Below are positions 2,336 through 61,655 of a DNA stretch of 64,000 nt, in pieces. The stretch is from contig JAWQFM010000002.1 in NCBI GenBank assembly GCA_033442325.1, positions 324,403 to 388,402 on the forward strand, in the 5' to 3' direction. How positions within the stretch are numbered: the first letter of the stretch is position 1; each line of letters opens with the position of its first letter. The translations under genes and the position numbers were made by a program. The DNA comes from Salpingoeca rosetta. Lineage: Eukaryota; Protista; Choanoflagellata. The notes below the pieces were generated by a model. The model searched no databases. It saw only the letters and a program-made list of their open reading frames with translations, and had not been told where the DNA came from.

Positions 2336-5952
<3,617 letters not shown>

Positions 5953-49166: not shown

Positions 49167-49249
49167 AGGTCAGGACGGGGTTCGAACCCGCGCTTTCGAT
49201 TGAAAATCACGGCCTAAACGTGACGCCTTAACCACTCGGCCACCTGACC
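49167..49249 (-). tRNA. tRNA-Leu, anticodon UAG, long variable arm
   Basis: Reverse complement reads GGTCAGG TG GCCGAGTGGTTAAGGC G TCACG TT-TAG-GC CGTGA TTTTCAATCGAAAG C GCGGG TTCGAAC CCCGT CCTGACC T, followed by a poly-T Pol III terminator. Confidence 0.95.
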
Positions 49250-49810: not shown

Positions 49811-52800
49811 CGTGACGTGTCTATGCTCGCACCCCTTCCTTTCTGACGCGCGCTCCAAGTGACTTAACTGCATATGTATGTCTGTGTGTTCACCCACCCC
49901 TTTGCTTCCTCACCCCCCCCCCCCCCGCTCCTTCTTCCTGTAGAACGCCAACTTGGTGTTGCAAGCTGACCGGAAGCTGCTCGACATTCGGGTGCGTGAT
50001 GACGCGACCGGTGAGGTCAAGTCCCTCAAGGGCCACCTCGACACAGTACGCATGGGCGACCGCGCCGTGCGCTCCATGCCACAGGACCTGCAGGAGCGCA
50101 AGAAGCGCCGCGCAGAGGCTCAAAGCAAGAAGAAGCCCGCGGCGTCGCTGCCTTCCTCCGTCCTCGCCAACTTTGCCGACCTCGGCCTCAAGTACTACCC
50201 AAAGACAAAGGACACGCAGCACTTTTACGAGCTCATCCTCTCCTACATCACCGACTTCCTCGGCAGCCAGCCCCAGGACATCCTCATGGGCGCCGCCGAC
50301 GAGATCCTCGCCGTGCTCAAGGACGAGGACATCAAGACAAAGGACAAGCAGCACGAGATCGCCTCCCTGCTCGGCCAGCGCGTCTCCGACGAAGAGTTTA
50401 CGCGCCTCGTCGGCCTGAGCCAGAAAATCACAGACTACCACGACACCACAGCCATGGAGGAAGAGGAGGAGCCCCTGGACGATGACACGGGCGTCGCCCT
50501 CGTCTTCGACCGCGATGAGGAAGAGGAGGAAACCACAGCCGCCGCCATGGCCGGCGACGAGGACGCAGAGGACCTCGATGAGGTCAAGGACATGGAGGAG
50601 GACGAGGAAGAGGAAGAGGCTGAGGCTGACATTGTCCGGGCCAACCTGCAGCGTGAGGCTGCGGCGGCCGCCGCCGCCGGCGACACGCTCAACCCCAGCG
50701 ACCTTGACGCCTTCTGGCTCCAGCGCCAGCTCGGCCAGTATTCCAAGGATGCCATGGAGACGCAGAAGCTGGCAGACCAGTCCCTCAAGGTTCTCGGCGA
50801 GGCCAAGGACGACCGCGAGTGCGAGAACCGCCTCGTGCAGGTGCTCGGCTTTGACAAGTTCGACTTTGTCAAGATCCTGCGCAAGCACAGGAACCTCATC
50901 TACCACTGCATCATGCGCGCCAAGGCCCAGTCTGACGCCGAGCGTCGCGCCATCGAGGCAAAGATGCGCGCCGATGACGAGCTTGCGCCGGCGCTCAAGC
51001 TGCTCAAGGAAGGCGCAGAGGGCGACAGCCGCGCCGAGGCCAAGGCACGCAAGGAGGCCCAGCGGCAAGGAAAGCTGGACCGCGACTTGGACACGGACGT
51101 GCGCGACGCCCACATCACCAAGCAGGTGCTCAACATTGACAACCTCGTCTTCTCCCAAGGCAGCCACCTCATGGCCAACCGCAAGTGCGCCCTGCCAGAG
51201 GGCTCCTTCCGCAAGTCCCACAAGGGCTACGAGGAGGTGTACGTCCCCGCCCTCAAGGCCAAGCCGCTCAGCGAGAACGAGAAGCTGGTGCCCATCTCAT
51301 CGCTCCCAGACTGGGCACAGAAGGCCTTTAAGGGCTTCAAGAACCTCAACCGCGTGCAGAGCCAGCTCTTCCCCACGGCGTTTGGCTCCAATGAGAACCT
51401 CCTCGTCTGCGCCCCAACAGGTGCAGGCAAAACCAATGTGGCCTTGCTCACCATCCTTCACGAGATTGGCAGGCACCTCCTCCCCGACGGCAGCGTCGAC
51501 ATTGAAAACTTCAAGGTGTGGATGTGTGTGTGTGTGTATGTGATTTTGGCGATGGCATATTTCAGTGCTTGGTGTTCTTGCTGCTGCTGTTGCTGCTGCA
51601 TCGTGTGTTCACCTTTTCCCGTGTGCTCTTCTTTTTTTTTTTTCGACCTTGCTCGCATGCACACTCACTCACACTTACATTCACACACACACGTTCTGGC
51701 CATCCCCTTGTCCTTCCTTTGCTCCCACCTTACCCTGCACAGATTGTGTACATTGCGCCAATGAAGTCGCTTGTTGCGGAGATGACGGGTAACTTCTCCG
51801 CACGCCTGGAGCCATACAACCTGAGCGTGGAGGAACTCACCGGTGACCAGTCCCTGACCAGGGAGCAGATTTTCAACACCAACGTCCTCGTCTGCACGCC
51901 CGAAAAGTGGGATGTCATCACACGCAAGGGCGGCTTTGAGGGCGTCGTTGGCCTCGTCATCATCGATGAGATTCATCTCCTCCACGATGAGCGCGGCCCC
52001 GTGCTCGAGTCCATCATTGCCCGCAGCATTCGCCAAGTCGAGCGCACACAGGAGAGCCTCCGCCTTGTTGGCCTCTCCGCAACATTGCCAAACTATGAAG
52101 ACGTCTCTGCTCTCCTGCGCGTTGACCCCAGCAAAGGTGCGACCCCCCGTGTGTCGTGCATCTGTGTGCGGTGTGTGTCTTCTGCTGTTCTGTGCTTGAA
52201 CCGCTTGTTCTTGTTCTTGTTCTTGTGCGCACGCGTGTGCCTATGCATCGCAGTTGAGTTGTTTCACGCCTCACACTTATACACTCACCTCAACTCAACT
52301 CAACTCACCTCACGCAACCAATTTCCCTACATTCCTACCCCCGCCGACATTCCCATGTTTTTATTTGTGTGCCGCCAGGTCTCTTCTTCTTCGACAACAG
52401 CTTCCGCCCCTGCCCCTTGGAACAGCAGTACATTGGCATCACGGAGCGCAAGGCCCTCAAGCGCTTCCAGCTCATGAACGACATCCTGTATGACAAGGTT
52501 GTTGCCAACGCCGGCCGCAACCAGGTGCTTGTGTTCACGCACTCGCGCAAGGACACCGCCAAGACGGCCCGCATGCTGCGCGACATGTGCCTGCAGAAGG
52601 AGATGCTTGGTGCCTTCCTCCGCGAGGATTCAGCCAGCGTGGAGATTCTCCGGGACTCTGCCGAGGCCACCAAGAACCGCGACCTCGTGGACCTCCTCCC
52701 ACACGGCTTTGCCATCCACCACGCCGGCATGACCCGCGCGGACCGCACGCTTGTCGAGGATCTCTTTGCCGGCCGCCACATCCAGGTGCTCGTCTCCACG

Positions 52801-53119
52801 GCCACGCTTGCCTGGGGTGTTAACCTTCCCGCCCACACCGTCATCATCAAGGGCACCCAAGTCTACGCCCCAGACAAGGGCGGCTGGACCGAGCTGTCCC
52901 CGCTCGATGTGCTGCAGATGCTTGGTCGCGCTGGCCGCCCTCAGTTCGACAAGCAAGGCGAGGGCATCCTCATCACCACACATGCCGAGTTGCAGTACTA
53001 CCTCTCCCTCCTCAACGAGCAGCTCCCCGTTGAGAGCCAGTTTATGTCCAAGCTCGCAGACAACCTCAACGCCGAGATTGTTGCAGGTACGTCCTCCTGT
53101 GCTGCCTGCATACAGGCAG

Positions 53120-53184
<65 letters not shown>

Positions 53185-56054
53185 CCCCCCCTCTCTGTCC
53201 GAGCCAACGATGCAAACTATTTTAATCTGTCAATCCCATGACAATTTACCATGATTACAACAACCTCTAGGTTACTGAGGCTCGTGTTTCTGCTTTTGCT
53301 CCACCTTATATGTGGGCGTGCGGTTACGCTGCATGTCGTCCTGTTACCTTCCTCCTTTCCTTCAACTTTCCTCCTCCTTCTCCCCCTCTTCTTTTGGGTT
53401 TGAGCCAACGATGCAAACTTTATCATAATCTGTCAATCCCATGACATTTTCCGTGATTACATCTACCTCTAGGTTACTGAGGCTCTGCCAACCCTCTCCT
53501 TGTTCCTCTTTATGTGTTGTCTCTCCACATCCTCCTCATTTTGTCTGTTGTATCTCTTGTGCGAGGCGCATGGGGTGTCACCGGTGATGCAAACTTATCA
53601 TAATCTGTCAATCCCATGACATTTCACCGTGATTATATTTACCTCTAGGTTACTGAGGTGCATCCACCTCGTCTCGTTTCCCCTCCCACTTTGACATTCC
53701 CCTTGCTCCTTTCCTTCCTTCCTTTTTTTTTTTTTTCAATCCCCATCCCTTACCCTTACAAGCCAGCACGCACGCGCTTGTGTGGCTGTCACCAGCTTGT
53801 TTACGATGAACCACACTCACAATGTGCATGAACTTGGTTGCGTGATACACCTCACAGGTACGGTGCAGAACCTCGATGAGGCCGTGCAGTGGCTTTCGTA
53901 CACATACTTGTATGTGCGTCTGCTGCGTAACCCTGCCCTCTACGGCGTGACGGCGGACGACCTTCGCAACGACCCCGTACGTTTATTTATGCTCGCGCTT
54001 CCATTTGCATGGCTCGCTTGACCGGCTCTCTGTTGGCTGGTTTGGGTGTCTCGGGCCACTCATATCACTCCTTGTTCGGCACTTGCACTTGTTCAATATC
54101 GTAATGGTTCCTTCAGAAACTGGAGCGCTTCCGTGCCAACCTCGTGCACACCGCGGCCCTCCAGCTTGACAAGAGCAACTTGCTCAAGTACGACAGGAAA
54201 ACTGGAAACTTCCAGGTTTGTAAGCACTTGCGTGTGTGTGTGTGCTTGGCGATTGGCTTTGTTGTTTGCTTGGTGTCGTGTGCATGCGATGACAAGGTCA
54301 CCGTCCGCTTACCAACAACCTCGTTTCCCTTGCGTTCGTGCATGCACGCAGGTGACGGATCTTGGTCGCATTGCTAGCCACTACTACTGTGACTTTCACA
54401 CCATCAGCATGTACAACAGCTTGCTCAAGCCCACCTTGACGGAGATTGAGTTGCTACGCATCTTCTCCCGCTCCAGCGAGTTTAAGCTCGTCAGGGTGCG
54501 TTGAACGCTTGGGGTTTACCTCTGCTCTGACGTGCGGGTGATGTGCTGTTGTTTGTTTGTTTGTTTTGCTTTGTTCCACCGTTTCCTCGTCGTTGTTGCC
54601 ACGCTCGTCCATGCTTTTCACGACTATCAGTCATGCTCACCCGCCTCACCCATCCACACCTTCGCCTTTTCTTGCTTCATTTGCGTGCAGGTTCGGGAAG
54701 AGGAGAAGCTTGAGTTGCAGACCCTGATGGAGCGCGTCCCCATCCCCATCAAGGAGAGCATTGATGAGCCGAGCGCAAAGATCAACGCGCTGCTGCAGTC
54801 GTACATCTCCAAACTCAAACTGGACGGCTTCTCTCTTGCATCAGACATGGTTTACATCACGCAATCTGGTACGTTGCACACCACTTGCCCCCTTTCATTG
54901 GACACACTGAATGTTGTTTTCGGTTGCTGTTTGCGGTTTGTTTGGTGTGCGGGTTTGTGGGGTTTGTACTGGTGTGAGCGTACCATCGCTGCTGTTTTCT
55001 GCTGAATGCTGCTGTTTTCTGCTCCTTGTGGTGGCCGATGCTCATTGCGCGTTGTTCTTGCCTTGCTGCTGCTGCTGCTTCACTTGTCCAGCTGGTCGCC
55101 TGATGCGTGCCATCTTTGAGATTGTGCTTCGTCGTGGCTGGGCCCAGGTTGCAGGCCGCGCCCTCACCCTCTGCAAGATGATTGACCGCCGCATGTGGGC
55201 AACGTAAGGCGCCTTTCTCTTCCATGCCCACGGGTTGTCACGTTTACTCCTTGGATCGCTGCTTCGCTTGCGTTCCTTGCCCGCCAACTTCATTTCTTGT
55301 GTGTGTATGTGTGGCTCTTGTTTCTGCTTGCCTCACCACCTCACGTTTGTGTGCCAATCACTTGCAGGGCGTGTCCACTGAAGCAATTCCCTAAGCTGAA
55401 CCCTGTTGCGGTGCAGAAACTGGAGCGCAAGGGCCTTTTCTGGTCCCAACTGACAGAGCTCAGTCACACCGAGCTTGGCGAGCTGATTCGCACGCCCGCG
55501 GTGAGTCCTCCAGATCTGGTGTTGTTGTTGCTGTTGTTGTTGGTTGTTGTTGCTGCTGCTGCTGCTGCTTCTTGGCTTTGTGTTTTGCTGCGCACGAGTC
55601 ACTTGTTGTCACGCTCACGATTTACTACCCCAATGTTTTTTGTTTTTTGGTCGTTACTTTGTCTTTATCAACAACAGCTGGGCAAGACCCTTCACAAGTA
55701 CATTCACTTGCTGCCCAAGATGGAGCTGAGCTCCTATGTCCAGCCCATCACCCGCACCACCCTCCGTGTGAAGCTCACCCTCAACGCTGACTTCCCTTGG
55801 GACGACGCTGTGCACGGCTCCCAGCAGAGCTTCTGGGTCTTCGTGGAGGTGTGTTTGGAAGCAACTTGTCGAGCCAACGGCTCGGTTGTGTGCCTCTGTG
55901 TGTCTGTGTGCGCGTGTGCCTTGCCTCCACCCAGCTCCTGATCTAAAGTGCTATGGCAACACGGTGCTCGGTCTCGGGCTCTCTCCTTGTATTCCCGACA
56001 TCTCCGCATTTCTCTTGTCCTTCTTGTCCATCCTCCTGCAATTTCTTGCTTTTT

Positions 56055-56150
<96 letters not shown>

Positions 56151-56480
56151 CCCCCTCTCCAGCCTTTTTTTTTCTTGTTTCGCTGTGCACTCCGATGATG
56201 AAGACTTTTCTTGTGGAGGGATTAGTACCGCGCCTGACCGTGCAAGCGCCCACCTCTTTCCCGTTGTTTCTCCCCATTCCCCTCTTTCGTTCTGCGCCTC
56301 TTCCTGTGTGCGGGCTGCTTCATGGTCTGGTGTCGCGAACATCTCGAAGATACTCGCGGATTATGAGAGCTGAGGAGTTGCACAGCTGATTTTTCCATCG
56401 TTCTTCTGTATTTGTGTGTGTGTGTGTGTACATCCTGGTGCTGCGCACACGCGCGCCCGCACACACACACACACAATCTC

Positions 56481-56536
<56 letters not shown>

Positions 56537-59500
56537 GCTGCGCCTTGCAACGCCTGCCTCACTCATCGCTCATCTCAACCGTCGATGTGCTTGCTCCTGG
56601 TGTGCGTGTGTCATAGGATGCGGACTCGGAGAACCTGTTGCATTATGAGTTTTTCTCACTCAAGAAGCGCTTTGCAGAACTGGACCACGTGCTTGAGTTT
56701 TTCGTGCCCATCACAGATCCCATGCCTCCCCAATACTTTGTCCGCGTCGTCTCTGACAGGTATGCGTATGTTGTGCAACACGACACTCATCGCACCGCAT
56801 GCACATGAATCCTCCGTTGTGTCGGTTTGGCTTGTGTCCCCCTCCCCAGCCCTCTCCCCTGTTGTCTTGTCTTCCGTCCGTTTCCTATCCTGCCCCTTTG
56901 TGCGCGGCTGGTATTAGCTTTAGTCCGCCTGTGTTCCTGTGCCAATGGGAAGATGATGAACCTTGACGAAGCGCGAGTTGCGCGCTGAGGCTTGGGAAGC
57001 GGCCCAACCAGTGTCGGATCACCGGGGGATCCCTGCCGCGTTGCCATGGTTCTCTCTTGAGCCTGGTTGCTTTTGTTGAGGCCATGCCACTCGTGCGCAG
57101 CCCCTGTTGTTGGACCGGCAGTCTGCTGGGACGAACCACCGTGACCCTTGCCGTTATTTTCAGTGATTACGTTTATCGTCACCGTCTGATTCCCATGTTG
57201 CTTGTGCTGCGTCTGTTACTCTGTTACCGCTTGTTCTTCCTGCGCCGCCTCAACGATGCTCGCAACGGCGACCCTTTGATTCGATTCTCTTCCCATCCTC
57301 TTCCTCTTCATTTTGTTGTGTTTGCGCGCTGTTGTGTTTGCGTTTTTGGCGCTTGCTCCCTTTGTATCACCACTGCAGTTTTGTGGTGCGTGTTTGCTGT
57401 CGCATCGTCGTGGCTTTCGAGATGCGTGGGCGTGATGAACCTTGACGAAGCGCGAGTTGCGCGCTGAGGCTTGGGAAGCGGCCCAACCAGTGTCGGATCA
57501 CCGGGGGATCCCTGCCGCGTTGCCATGGTTCTCTCTTAAGCCTAGTTGCTTTTGTTGAGGCCATGCCACTCGTGCGCAGCCCCTGTTGTTGGACCGGCAG
57601 TCTGCTGGGACGAACCACCGTGACCCTTGCCGTTATTTTCAGTGATTACGTTTATCGTCACCGTCTGATTCCCATGTTGCTTGTGCTGCGTCTGTTACTC
57701 TGTTACCGCTTGTTCTTCCTGCGCCGCCTCAACGATGCTCGCAAGGGCGACCCTTTGGTTCGATTCTCTTCCCATCCTCTTCCTCTTCTTCATTTTGTTG
57801 TGTTTGCGCGCTGGTGTGTTTGCGTTTTTGGCGCTTGCTCCCTTTGTATCACCACTGCAGTTTTGTGGTGCGTGTTTGCTGTCGCATCGTCGTGGCTTTC
57901 GAGATGCGTGGGCGTGATGAACCTTGACGAAGCGCGAGTTGCGCGCTGAGGCTTGGGAAGCGGCCCAACCAGTGTCGGATCACCGGGGGATCCCTGCCGC
58001 GTTGCCATGGTTCTCTCTTAAGCCTAGTTGCTTTTGTTGAGGCCATGCCACTCGTGCGCAGCCCCTGTTGTTGGACCGGCAGTCTGCTGGGACGAACCAC
58101 CGTGACCCTTGCCGTTATTTTCAGTGATTACGTTTATCGTCACCGTCTGACCCTCGCATTCAACCCAGCCAGCAGAGATGGTTGTTTTCCTTTTCATCGG
58201 GGCTTCTGTTTTTCCCTACCCAATGTCTCTCCCTTTGCCGCATACGCGATTGTTTTTGTCTGCTGCCCCCTGTTCCTCTCCCACACACACACACACACAC
58301 ACATGTTCTCTCGTTCCTTGGCTACTTGCGCTTGATGCCAACCTTTGCATCCTCGCAACACATCACTCACGTGCACACGCGCAACCTCCTGCCTTTGTCC
58401 AGGTGGATCGGCTCGGAGACTGTGCTGCCAATTTCCTTCCGCCATCTGATTCTTCCCGAGCGCTTCCCGCCAACGACCGAGCTGCTTGACCTGCAGCCGC
58501 TGCCGGTGACGGCACTGAAGAAGCCCGCGTACCAGCGCTTCTACGTGAACCGCTTCAAGTACTTCAACGCCATTCAGACGCAGGTGTTCAACGCGCTGTA
58601 CGACTCGGACGACAACGTCTTCGTCGGTGCGCCCACGGGCTCTGGCAAGACAGTGTGTGCCGAGCTGGCGATGCTGCGGTCCTTCTCGCAGAACCCCAAC
58701 GCCAAGTGCATCTACGTGGCGCCGCTGCAGGAGGTGTGCAACCGCATGCTGCCCGCGTGGAAGGAGATGTTTGGCAAGGGGCTTGGCAAGACGGTGGTTG
58801 GCCTGACCGGCGACATGAGCGCCGACCTGAAGCTGCTGGCGAGCGCCAACGTTGTGGTGGCCACGCCCGAGCAGTGGGACGTGCTGTCGCGTCGCTGGAA
58901 GCAGCGCCGCCACGTGCAGAACATTGCGCTCTTCATCGTTGACGACGCGCACATGATTGGCGCGGAGAACGGGCCCGTGCTGGAGATTGTGTGCGCGCGC
59001 ATGCGCTACATGGCCAGCCAGCTGGAGCGCAGGCTGCGCACCATCATGCTTGCCGTGCCCGTCGCCAACGCGCGCGAGATGGGCAGCTGGTGCGGCGTGT
59101 CCGGCTCCAACGTGTTCAACTTCCACCCCACCGTGAGGCCCGTGCCGCTGGAGCTGCACGTGCAAGGCTTCAATGCGGCGCACGCCACGGCCCGCCTCAT
59201 GCACATGGCTCGCCCCGTGTTCAACGCCATCAAGCGCCACTCCCCCAACAAGCCCGTGCTCGTGTTTGTGCCCTCGCGCAAGCAGGCGCAGGTGACGGCT
59301 GTGGACCTGTATGCGTTCGCTGCGGCGGAGGGCGCGGACAAGCGCTTCATCGGCTGCGACGAGGAGGACCTCAAGCGCTTCACGGACCGGCTCAAGGACG
59401 AGCACCTGCGGGAGACGGCGCTGAGCGGCATTGCGTACCTGCACGAGGCGCTCGATGACGAGGACCGCCGCATTGTGACGCACCTCTTCACGTCCGGCGC

Positions 59501-61240
59501 CATCCAGGTGCTGGTGGCGTCGCGCGACCTTGCCTGGGGCCTGTCCACGCCGGCACACTTGGTTGTGCTGCAGGACACGCAGTACTACGACGGCAAGGAC
59601 CACCGCTACGTCGACTACCCGCTGACGGACGTGCTGCAGATGATGGGGTACGCCGGGCGCCCTCTGCAAGATGACTGCGGCAAGTGCGTGCTGCTGTGCC
59701 AGTCCACCAAGAAGCAGGTCTTCAGCAAGTTCCTGAACGAGCCCATGCCTGTGGAGTCGCACCTCGACTATGTGCTGCACGACCACTTCAACGCCGAGGT
59801 TGTCACCAAGATTATCGAGCACAAGCAGGATGCGGTCGACTACCTGACCTGGACGCTCATGTACCGCCGCATGACGCAGAACCCCAACTACTACAACCTG
59901 CACGGCGTGACGCACCGCCACCTGTCGGACCACCTGTCCGAGCTGGTGGAGACGACGCTCAGCGACCTGGCGGAGAGCAAGTGCATTTCCGTTGACGAGG
60001 ACAACGATGAGATTTCCGCGCTCAACCTGGGCATGATTGCCGCGTACTACTACATTGACTACACCACCATTGAGCTCTTCAGCCGCTCGCTCACGGACAA
60101 GACCAAGCTTAAGGGTCTGCTGGACATCATCTGCGCCGCCACGGAGTTCAAGAAGATCCCAGTGCGCTACCGCGAGGACCGCGTGCTGCGCGTGCTGGCC
60201 AAGAAGGTGCCGCTGAAGCCGCGCACCAAGGTGCTGTACAACGACCCGCACGTCAAGGCCAACCTGCTGATCCAGGCACACCTGTCGCGCTTGGAGCTGT
60301 CGCCGGAGCTGCAGCACGACCAGGAGCGGGTGCTGGCGATTGTGCCGCGCCTGATCCAGGCGTGTGTGGACGTGCTGTCGTCGAGCGCGTGGCTGGCGCC
60401 CGCGCTGGCTGCCATGGAGCTGTCCCAGATGATCACCCAGGCGGTGTGGGTCACGGATCCGCTGCTGCGGCAGCTGCCGCACATCACTCAGGATGCGCTG
60501 AAGCGGGCCAGCGAGAACGAGCTGGAGAGCATCTTCGACATCACCGAGTGCGAGGACGACGTGCGCGACAAGGTGCTGCAACTGTCGCCGGCGCAGATGG
60601 CGGATGTTGCGCGCTACTGCAACCGCTACCCAAGCATTGAGCTCGAGTACGAGGTTGAGGATGAGGAGGACGTGCATGCTGGCGCGCCCGTGCTTGTTTC
60701 TGTTGCGCTGGAGCGCGATGAGGATGAGGACGACGACACTCCCGTTGGACCCGTCATTGCGCCCTTCTACCCTCAGCGCAAGGAGGAGGCCTGGTGGTGT
60801 GTGATTGGCGACACGGCATCCAACAGGTGTGTTTCTGTTGCAGTGTACGCGTGTTTGAGGGGGGGAGGCTTGTGGGTGCTGTTTTGTGTGTGTGTGTGTG
60901 TGTGTGCGTATCCTTGGAGGTTGGCGTTCCCTTGTGGTTGGATTGTGTGTTGCCTTGCTCTGTCGCGTGCGTGCAAACATAATAAGAGCATTGCTCCCTT
61001 TGACTCACCCGTGCCTTGTTCTTGTTCAGGTTATTGGGCATCAAGCGCGTTGCGCTGCAGCAGCGCTCTCGCATCAAGCTGGACTTTGTTCCACCCGAGG
61101 AAGGCAAGCACACGTTCAAGCTGTACTTCATGTGCGACTCGTATCTCGGCTGCGACCAGGAGTACGACCTGGAGCTGGATGTCAAGGAGCCACTGGAGAT
61201 GGACAGCAGCGAGGAGGAGTCGGAATCAGACGAGGAGTAA
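49634..61240 (+). CDS. SNRNP200: U5 snRNP 200 kDa helicase Brr2, about 14 exons
   Basis: [16 protein letters not shown]; first cassette [20 protein letters not shown] and [12 protein letters not shown]; Sec63 unit; second cassette APTGSGKT and DDAH; C-terminal [15 protein letters not shown]. Confidence 0.97.
53200..53284 (+). ncRNA. Intronic box C/D snoRNA, copy A (18S antisense element AATCTGTCAATCC)
   Basis: Terminal stem CGAGCC/GGCTCG, degenerate box C ACGATGC, D' ATGA, C' ATGATTA and D CTGA (53275-53278). Confidence 0.8.
53402..53485 (+). ncRNA. Intronic box C/D snoRNA, copy B
   Basis: GAGCC/GGCTC stem with the same boxes and guides as copy A. D box at 53477-53480. Confidence 0.8.
53579..53660 (+). 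ncRNA. Intronic box C/D snoRNA, copy C
   Basis: A different terminal stem (CACC/GGTG), box C GTGATGC and the same guides. D box at 53653-53656. Confidence 0.8.
56182..56386 (+). ncRNA. Long (~200 nt) intronic box C/D RNA candidate
   Basis: 12-bp terminal stem GCTGTGCA-CTCC / GGAG-T-TGCACAGC, box C ATGATGA (56195-56201), D' CTGA (56234-56237), internal stems and D CTGA (56370-56373). Confidence 0.7.
56945..57196 (+). ncRNA. Long (~240 nt) intronic box C/D RNA, tandem copy 1
   Basis: Stem ATGGGAA/TTCCCAT, box C ATGATGA at 56953, D' CTGA, a ~170-nt rod hairpin, C' GTGATTA and D CTGA (57186-57189). Confidence 0.72.
56953..58150 (+). repeat. Tandem repeat with 479/482-bp period, about 2.5 units, inside Brr2 intron 56760-58402
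   Basis: Three near-identical ~237-nt cores and two near-identical ~243-nt spacers that differ by a few substitutions and a 3-nt indel. Confidence 0.97.
57426..57675 (+). ncRNA. Long intronic box C/D RNA, tandem copy 2 (chimeric flanks)
   Basis: Box C GTGATGA at 57432 and D CTGA (57665-57668). The body is nearly identical to copies 1 and 3. Confidence 0.68.
57904..58159 (+). ncRNA. Long intronic box C/D RNA, tandem copy 3
   Basis: Stem ATGCG-T-GGG/CCC-T-CGCAT, box C GTGATGA at 57914 and D CTGA (58147-58150). Confidence 0.72.
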
Positions 61241-61655
61241 CAGGGAGATGGTCGCGCCCACACTTTCCAACACAAGCGAGCGGGCGAGAGTGCTTCATAT
61301 ATGATTTGTCGTTGTTGTCGTCGTAACGTGTGTTTCGTGACTATGCGTTGACGCTGATGCTGTTACATTTTTTTCCTCAAGAAGGGTGTTACCGCCGCTT
61401 GTCATTGGCGGATGTCCCTATTCCTCCAGCGCTTGGTGTTTGTTTTGTCACTTGTGTCAACCCTTGTTCTGCCTCTCCCTCTTCCCTTTCCTATTTCCTT
61501 TGACATCTTCTTCTTCTTTCTTCACCGTGCGTACCTTGACGTGCTCTTTGAAGCACCGTGCATTGTGCCCTGTACACCATACCAAACTAAACTAGACGGC
61601 CAACACAAAAGAGGGGGGTTGAGGTTGGAATACCATACATAATACACGCAAACGA

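Follow-up and report, generated by a model that had tools for sequence, protein, structure and literature searches.

The 64-kb window analyzed here, a stretch of 64,000 nucleotides (nt) from contig JAWQFM010000002.1 of the choanoflagellate Salpingoeca rosetta, contains the Brr2/SNRNP200 gene on the + strand at about 49950-61300. The gene is divided into several exons and encodes the Pfam domains plug, PWI, two DEAD/Helicase_C cassettes, two Sec63 domains, and wHTH. One of its introns, which spans 56760-58402 on the + strand (1643 nt, with GT at 56760 and AG at 58401-58402), holds a tandem array of three repeats, each of which would encode an intron-derived RNA of about 236-250 nt of the box C/D small nucleolar RNA (snoRNA) type. 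The upstream exon ends at 56759 and is followed by GTATGC, the downstream exon starts at 58403 after CAG, and the phase of the intron splits an R codon after ..VVSD. The exon borders on both sides therefore place the array on the sense strand and inside a single Brr2 intron. Together with the GT..AG ends, they agree with the initial annotation of this DNA, in which an intron of this core spliceosome gene was named as the host.

Repeat limits, boxes, and terminal stems

At 56954-58150, Tandem Repeats Finder detected 2.5 copies of a 482-bp unit with 98% matches, within which a core of 236 nt occurs in triplicate, starting at 56954, 57433, and 57915. Homology among the cores opens at the T of TGATGA and closes at the A of CTGA. 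As copy 1 has an A ahead of this T and the other two copies have a G, the start reads RTGATGA. Three repeats of ~240 nt bounded exactly by RTGATGA and CTGA had already been described from the letters alone, and the same limits were recovered here. That both duplication limits fell on these motifs by chance is very unlikely, with an estimated probability of about 1e-5 even if the limits may shift by a few bases.

Including its terminal stem, copy 1 occupies 56946-57195, while copies 2 and 3 occupy 57424-57677 (core 57433-57668, C box GTGATGA from 57432) and 57905-58158 (core 57915-58150), all on the + strand. The cores of copies 2 and 3 are identical, and copy 1 differs from them at two apical positions (G-to-A). 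The copies are separated by spacer 1 at 57190-57432 (243 nt, pyrimidine-rich) and spacer 2 at 57669-57914 (246 nt), which is about 98% identical to spacer 1. As whole units including spacers are 98-100% identical, the copies alone are uninformative on constraint. The outer flanks, to the left of copy 1 and to the right of copy 3, are unrelated to the spacers. No further copies beyond the three were found in the 55.4-Mb assembly covered by the genome searches, either by BLAST or with patterns built on the stretch before the D box and on the first conserved internal block (block 1, see below). Genome matches with three mismatches were rejected as paralogs, as their number equals that of the control and the other blocks are missing from them.

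The order C, D', rod, C', and D proposed in the initial annotation was confirmed by the box positions. In copy 1, the C box ATGATGA lies at 56953-56959, the D' box CTGA at 56985-56988, the C' box GTGATTA at 57163-57169, and the D box CTGA at 57186-57189. The region from C to D' (56960-56988) ends in the D' box and holds the first putative guide. The region from C' to D (57163-57189) consists of GTGATTA, a 16-nt spacer at 57170-57185 corresponding to the second putative guide, and CTGA. At the ends of all three cores, a C box (ATGATGA or GTGATGA) and CTGA stand exactly where the C/D class has them.

A terminal stem of 6-8 bp closes each of the three copies, as well as the homologous RNA of a second species described below, so that four flank combinations all form a stem. 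TGGGAA at 56946-56951 pairs with TTCCCA at 57190-57195 in copy 1, GCGTGGG pairs with CCCATGT in copy 2 when G-U pairs are included, and TGCGTGGG (57905-57912) pairs with CCCTCGCA (58151-58158) in copy 3 at 7 of 8 positions. The flanks of copy 2 are mixed, with a 5' flank as in copy 3 and a 3' flank as in copy 1, and the 3' flank of copy 3 is unlike those of copies 1 and 2. Each terminal stem ranks in the best 0.6-3.6% of 3000 random pairs of flanks drawn from the window. This ranking is in line with the earlier observation that copies 1 and 3 have unrelated flanks and yet each forms a stem of its own.

Conservation of the RNA in a second choanoflagellate

Homologues of Brr2 were searched exon by exon. 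The search of a protein collection with the downstream exon gave the nearest relative (P0001, 78% identity) on contigs of the Tara Oceans metagenome. On one of them (L050), the orthologous exon starts at ~1027 and the preceding 1 kb is intron. The Brr2 exon of this relative is 87% identical to that of S. rosetta at the amino-acid level and 84% identical at the DNA level, and fourfold-degenerate sites are 61% identical. A homologous RNA was identified at about 499-720 of this contig, in the same Brr2 intron, the remainder of which is unalignable. The spacers have no counterpart in it beyond low-complexity similarity, and a single copy of the RNA is found in the ~1 kb of intron that is visible. 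A polymorphic sister contig (L053) differs from L050 only just outside the RNA.

The ortholog begins with TTTGGGA-AG-GTGATTA, followed by a long hairpin, CTGAG, and GCGG, and it ends with GTGATTG, 15 nt, CTGA, and TCCCAAA. It thus carries GTGATTA, with one deviation, and CTGA at its ends, and shares with copy 1 the flanks TGGGAAG on the 5' side and CTGAT.CCCA on the 3' side. CTGAG and GTGATT(A/G) are kept in both species as D' and C' boxes on either side of the rod, although boxes this short are weak evidence taken alone. The distance from C' to D is 16 nt in S. rosetta and 15 nt in the ortholog.

Three blocks within the rod, which spans 56999-57142 on the + strand in copy 1 and lies between D' and C', are the most similar between the two species. 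Block 1 (57009-57027) is identical at 19 of 19 positions, block 2 (57102-57126) at 22 of 25 (34 of 41 across the BLAST segment), and block 3 (57132-57141, CGAACCACCG) at 10 of 10. These internal blocks are accordingly 88-100% conserved compared to 61% of neutral sites, whereas the guides are unconserved. The apex between blocks 1 and 2 is variable, with 76 nt in S. rosetta and 29 nt in the ortholog.

The minimum-energy fold of the S. rosetta RNA shows the rod helices listed in the initial annotation, and the two rods, folded independently, form the same helices. The first is a helix of 4 bp, formed by CCCA/UGGG in S. rosetta and by ACUC/GAGU in the ortholog, and it is followed in both rods by CAG/CUG and a GU bulge. 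Next, UGUCGG pairs with CCGGCA in the former species and with CCGAUA in the latter, where two changes keep the pairs via wobble. Beyond an internal loop, both rods share CGGGG/CCCUG before the variable apex. Two unpaired elements are invariant, namely an internal loop of 5 x 8 nt with AUCAC opposite UUGYUGGA and the bulge CGAACCA. A kink-turn in the conserved internal loop was rejected on a reading of the sequence, since no register yields tandem G-A pairs. Of the two positions at which the copies of S. rosetta differ, one converts a G-U to an A-U pair.

A covariance model for which the S. rosetta rod and its minimum-energy structure were the only input matched the ortholog over its full length (53.7 bits, E 2.4e-10). 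Standard pairs fill 99.2% of cells in the alignment obtained, and both partners are changed in 7 pairs. These values were reached by 1 of 500 shuffles and by none of the structures slid by 1-3 columns.

The comparison of the two species shows, at the level of sequence, that selection maintains all four boxes together with the terminal stem and, of the long irregular stem between D' and C', the lower part, to which the invariant loop and bulge belong. The selection on RNA structure claimed in the initial annotation, where an examination of related Brr2 introns was proposed, was thereby borne out, as the ortholog keeps boxes, terminal stem, and rod with compensatory changes. As far as sequences have been found, the family is seen so far in two related choanoflagellates. 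Of the other Brr2 contigs, L054 and L066 have a tiny intron or none at the position of the array intron, and the flank on L055 is too short for the comparison.

Box-adjacent stretches, targets, and known RNA families

The stretches next to the D and D' boxes do not follow the pattern of the rod. The 15-16 nt before D match at 7 of 15 positions between the species, and the region before D' is unalignable. The D' region folds into a hairpin in both species, with 6 bp (AGCGCG/CGCGCT, overlapping D') in S. rosetta and ~15 bp in the ortholog.

Targets were sought by a rule anchored at D+5, with shuffled guides as the null. The target set comprised the species' own 18S, full 28S, and rDNA spacers as well as the small nuclear RNAs (snRNAs) U1, U2, U4, U5, and U6, of which U5 was retrieved by its loop-I motif and the others by Rfam models. 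As a control, an ordinary ~85-nt snoRNA from another Brr2 intron was assigned a plausible 28S target with 11-12 perfect pairs.

Pairing of both guides to neighboring conserved 18S motifs with about one mismatch each had been suggested tentatively in the initial annotation. On the own 18S, these sites score 7 (D') and 9 (D) compared to shuffle means of about 9.4, and over the proposed stretch the D guide is mismatched at two positions, only one of which lies inside the scored 12-bp segment. Relative to what we take to be the conserved methylated positions there in the yeast and human maps, the proposed sites are also 2-3 nt off register. Against 28S, the spacers of the pre-rRNA, and U1, U2, U4, U5, and U6, neither guide gave a match reaching the 95th percentile of the null, and the guides of the ortholog likewise had no target above shuffles. 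The reading of the array as a family of guide RNAs for rRNA or snRNA was therefore not upheld, with guides unconserved, D' held in a hairpin, and no target beating shuffles. The guide feature of the class is absent, as it is in orphan C/D snoRNAs.

The conserved blocks were compared with 18S, 28S, and spacers (ungapped and by RNAduplex) and with the snRNAs, and their complementarity was no better than that of shuffles. They also have no complement in the 64-kb window including the whole Brr2 gene, and antisense action on that gene or on the window was not supported. A metagenome scan with an 18-mer of the D guide and D box returned 29 matches, close to the number estimated for chance, and none of them had a C' box or other similarity. 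As the guide is not the conserved part, this probe was ill-chosen.

Among the 4227 models of Rfam 15, which cover SNORD17, U3, U8, U13, snR4, snR45, and scaRNAs, no match at the gathering threshold was obtained for either species. Matches at E up to 10 were at chance level only, with sR3 (E about 1-6) for S. rosetta and nothing relevant in the ortholog, and an insert of 170 nt might mask a distant relationship from covariance models. The family is thus absent from Rfam, in keeping with its initial description as unannotated, and has the structural features of the C/D class. No account of snoRNAs from choanoflagellates, or of Brr2/SNRNP200 as a snoRNA host, was found in a search of the literature. 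A tRNA-like origin was dismissed, as ARAGORN finds nothing.

Vertebrate SNORD17 and yeast U14, with its Y-domain stem, are long C/D snoRNAs with an insert between their halves. RNAs of this type measure about 130-240 nt, and many are intron-encoded. The array RNA resembles them in its 5' C box, 3' D box, terminal stem, and extra stem-loop between the halves. It differs in that no sequence or model similarity exists and in that the insert is conserved here, whereas the guide or rRNA-binding elements are conserved there. Yeast U14 is laid out as C - domain A - stem - domain B - D. A U14 with a giant Y domain was rejected because domain A, a CAUUCGCAGUUUCCAC-type complement to 18S, is absent and RF00016 gives no match even when E values of up to 10 are allowed. 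Another contig carries two canonical U14-like genes that have domain A, with a U14 match of 60.6 bits.

U3, U8, U13/snR45, snR4, and U22 do not direct methylation and use their C/D boxes for stability and localization, whereas they function through conserved parts outside the boxes. Several of them are long, and several were long counted as orphans. Like these RNAs, the array RNA combines C/D ends with conserved segments elsewhere. However, those RNAs act on pre-rRNA by conserved antisense segments, and for the array RNA no complementarity of the conserved blocks to 18S, 28S, or the spacers was found beyond that of shuffles. A 5' extension ahead of the C box, as in U3 and U8, is absent. Guides of rRNA acetylation use two antisense segments that flank a target cytidine in helix 34 or 45 of 18S. 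In a test modeled on U13/snR45 and snR4, no 18S complement beat shuffles and the top matches were not in the 3' end of 18S, with the helix-34 site unmapped on this 18S.

The small Cajal body-specific RNAs (scaRNAs) U85, U87, U88, and U89 are about 270-330 nt long and have C/D ends with a large domain between D' and C'. The array RNA shares C/D ends and a large structured insert with these composite C/D-H/ACA RNAs but differs from them in having no H/ACA layout and no snRNA target found. In the insert, a reading of the sequence revealed neither an H box nor an ACA three nt before the end, nor a two-hairpin arrangement. The arrangement of tandem sister copies within a single intron of a protein-coding host also resembles the polycistronic intronic snoRNA clusters of plants, flies, and green algae, although the unit here is ~3x the usual length and has no recognizable target.

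Interpretation of the array RNA

The structural features of box C/D RNAs are present and the guide feature is not, which makes the RNA an orphan. The stretches near D' and D evolve freely and have no complement in rRNA or snRNA, so that the RNA is most likely an orphan that directs no conserved ribose methylation. Taken together, the sequences point to an undescribed, lineage-restricted orphan box C/D RNA rather than a guide of conserved methylation, with its function probably residing in the rod, and we regard this as the probable reading of the array.

Several points weigh against it. The mature ends of the RNA are inferred, and the comparison comprises two species only. At the position of the array intron, the more distant Brr2 on contig L066 (62% amino-acid identity) has an intron of ~37 nt, and no homolog was found within 6.4 kb. 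The C box of the ortholog, GUGAUUA, has U rather than G at position 6. The D' guide has a borderline match at 135-150 of 18S, with 9 Watson-Crick pairs within 16 and a score of 12 compared to 11.5 for the 95% null. This site falls within a 24-nt insertion peculiar to this 18S, and a lineage-specific methylation may therefore be directed there. The rod itself is no stabler than dinucleotide shuffles (z -0.28, or -1.64 for the whole RNA), so that within one genome alone it is no better than chance. Accordingly, the rod of the initial annotation stood in its fold and gained covariation from the second species but showed no extra stability compared to shuffles. As the alignment behind the pair counts was fitted to the model, it favors the structure. 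In support of a real covariation, the two rods were folded independently, and the covarying helix has its register fixed by invariant anchors beside it.

A canonical 2'-O-methylation guide or a scaRNA, in which the D' and D guides would place fibrillarin on the fifth paired nucleotide and the rod would be a mere insert, would account for the complete C, D', C', D layout, for the conserved C'-D spacing of 15-16 nt, and for the borderline D' match. The apical loops of copy 1 and the ortholog carry UGAG, the motif of the CAB box, which also fits a scaRNA. However, the UGAG conserved with the ortholog, the first in the apex, is UAAG in copies 2 and 3, although a second one (57079-57082) is unchanged in all three copies, and the insertion of 18S that contains the borderline site is not conserved. 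The divergence of both guide stretches next to internal blocks that are 88-100% identical, the burial of the D' guide in a hairpin in both species, the scores of the proposed 18S sites against their shuffle means, and the scans of 28S, spacers, and snRNAs, in which no guide of either species rose above shuffles, make such a guide unlikely. Less probable still is an element acting in cis or linked to its host, either as a small nucleolar long non-coding RNA (sno-lncRNA) of core, spacer, and core or as a structure linking snoRNP assembly to the splicing or expression of Brr2. Multiple snoRNA-type units per intron are a precondition for a sno-lncRNA, the host is a core spliceosome helicase, and both species have the RNA in the same intron. 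Yet the spacers are unconserved, the ortholog has one copy in ~1 kb of visible intron, and the conserved blocks find no complement in the window, including the whole of Brr2.

Two further explanations concern the rod and the repeats as such. With conserved blocks of 19 and 25 nt opposed on its two arms and an apex of 29-76 nt, the rod might be read as the precursor of a small RNA, a snoRNA-derived hairpin similar to that of a microRNA in which the conserved arms form the duplex and the apex the loop. The invariant 5 x 8 loop and the bulge would break this duplex and leave it poorly suited to a Dicer-type enzyme, conservation is equal in loop and paired nucleotides, and a third conserved block lies outside the duplex, so that we give this explanation very little weight. 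Neutral tandem duplication of intron DNA with coincidental box-like ends is the least credible of all. It would be compatible with units that are 98-100% identical including spacers and with an unremarkable folding energy, but it faces an ortholog with the same boxes, stem, rod, and compensatory changes in an otherwise unalignable intron, as well as array limits that fall on both sides exactly on TGATGA and CTGA.

If the repeats indeed encode an orphan box C/D RNA, its C and D boxes and terminal stem would form a kink-turn after splicing of Brr2, as is the rule for the class. Snu13, Nop56, Nop58, and fibrillarin would then bind this kink-turn and shield the RNA from exonucleases. With three copies per intron, cleavage in the spacers would be needed as well. 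The RNA might act via the conserved rod, by binding some partner that may be a protein or an RNA. A bolder extension, which we put forward tentatively and would not place above even odds, is a choanoflagellate-specific C/D ribonucleoprotein (RNP) without a guide role, in which the ends only stabilize and localize the RNA and the invariant loop and bulge bind a specific partner, possibly with a link to the spliceosome or small nuclear RNPs (snRNPs).

The pattern of constraint is opposite to that of an ordinary guide snoRNA, with boxes and rod conserved and guides free. If the rod is the working part, the RNA would join the small set of C/D RNAs without a methylation role (U3, U8, U13, and snR4), and a guide-free RNP would amount to a new functional type of snoRNA kept in an intron of the U5 snRNP helicase Brr2. 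Choanoflagellates are the closest living relatives of animals, and genome editing works in S. rosetta. For annotation, a C/D RNA of ~240 nt could be called here from the repeat limits alone, and target prediction from one sequence is unreliable without a second species.

Other RNA genes in Brr2 introns and in the genome

Two more C/D-type RNAs occur in introns of the same Brr2 gene. The intron at about 53088-53858 holds, at 53190-53665 of the window, three diverged copies of the ordinary ~85-nt snoRNA, with a C-like box GATGCA, C' ATGATTA or GTGATTA, D box CTGA, and a terminal stem GAGCC/GGCTC. The last 11-12 nt of its D guide alone are common to the three copies and match 28S perfectly (lsu7 3598-3609), which predicts methylation at 28S C3601. 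In the intron neighboring that of the array, a C/D-type RNA of ~180-200 nt lies at 56194-56373 (TGATGA .. ATTATGAGAG-CTGA, stem CTCC/GGAG). As a paralog of the array RNA it was rejected, the C box alone being common to both. A homolog with the same 5' stretch and D guide was found at 3196-3347 of contig L066 (Logan SRR35819065, 62% amino-acid identity) in the orthologous intron. The occurrence in this distant Brr2 implies that the ~200-nt RNA is conserved more widely and that its D guide is constrained. No rRNA target was found for this guide. Directly upstream of the start region of Brr2, a tRNA gene (58.5 bits) lies on the - strand at 49167-49249 of the window.

Retrieval of the target RNAs yielded further observations on the genome. 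The 18S is 2096 nt long and has lineage-specific insertions, including the one of 24 nt at 133-156. The 28S on C30 (L008) diverges from the full-length copies (L007 on G000:C3 and L009) after ~3615 and therefore belongs to a truncated or misassembled unit. The sole match to U6 (L012 1500-1700, G000:C9:815095..) stops at Rfam model position 68, and the remaining U6 (GGATGACACGC..) resumes ~70 nt further on. GT..AG ends are missing from the inserted stretch, within which a B-box-like GGTTCGATGCC occurs, and the interruption may be an unusual insertion or an intron. A match to SCARNA2 below the gathering score of 48 (34.8 bits, E 1e-5) lies on the - strand of L065 at 964-1170. Two near-identical U5 genes, missed genome-wide by the Rfam U5 model, occur on L064 and L065 at about 1440-1625 (G000:C1:2704401 and C11:314489), each with loop I GCCUUUUACUAGAGA, an Sm site AUUUUUGG, and a 3' hairpin.

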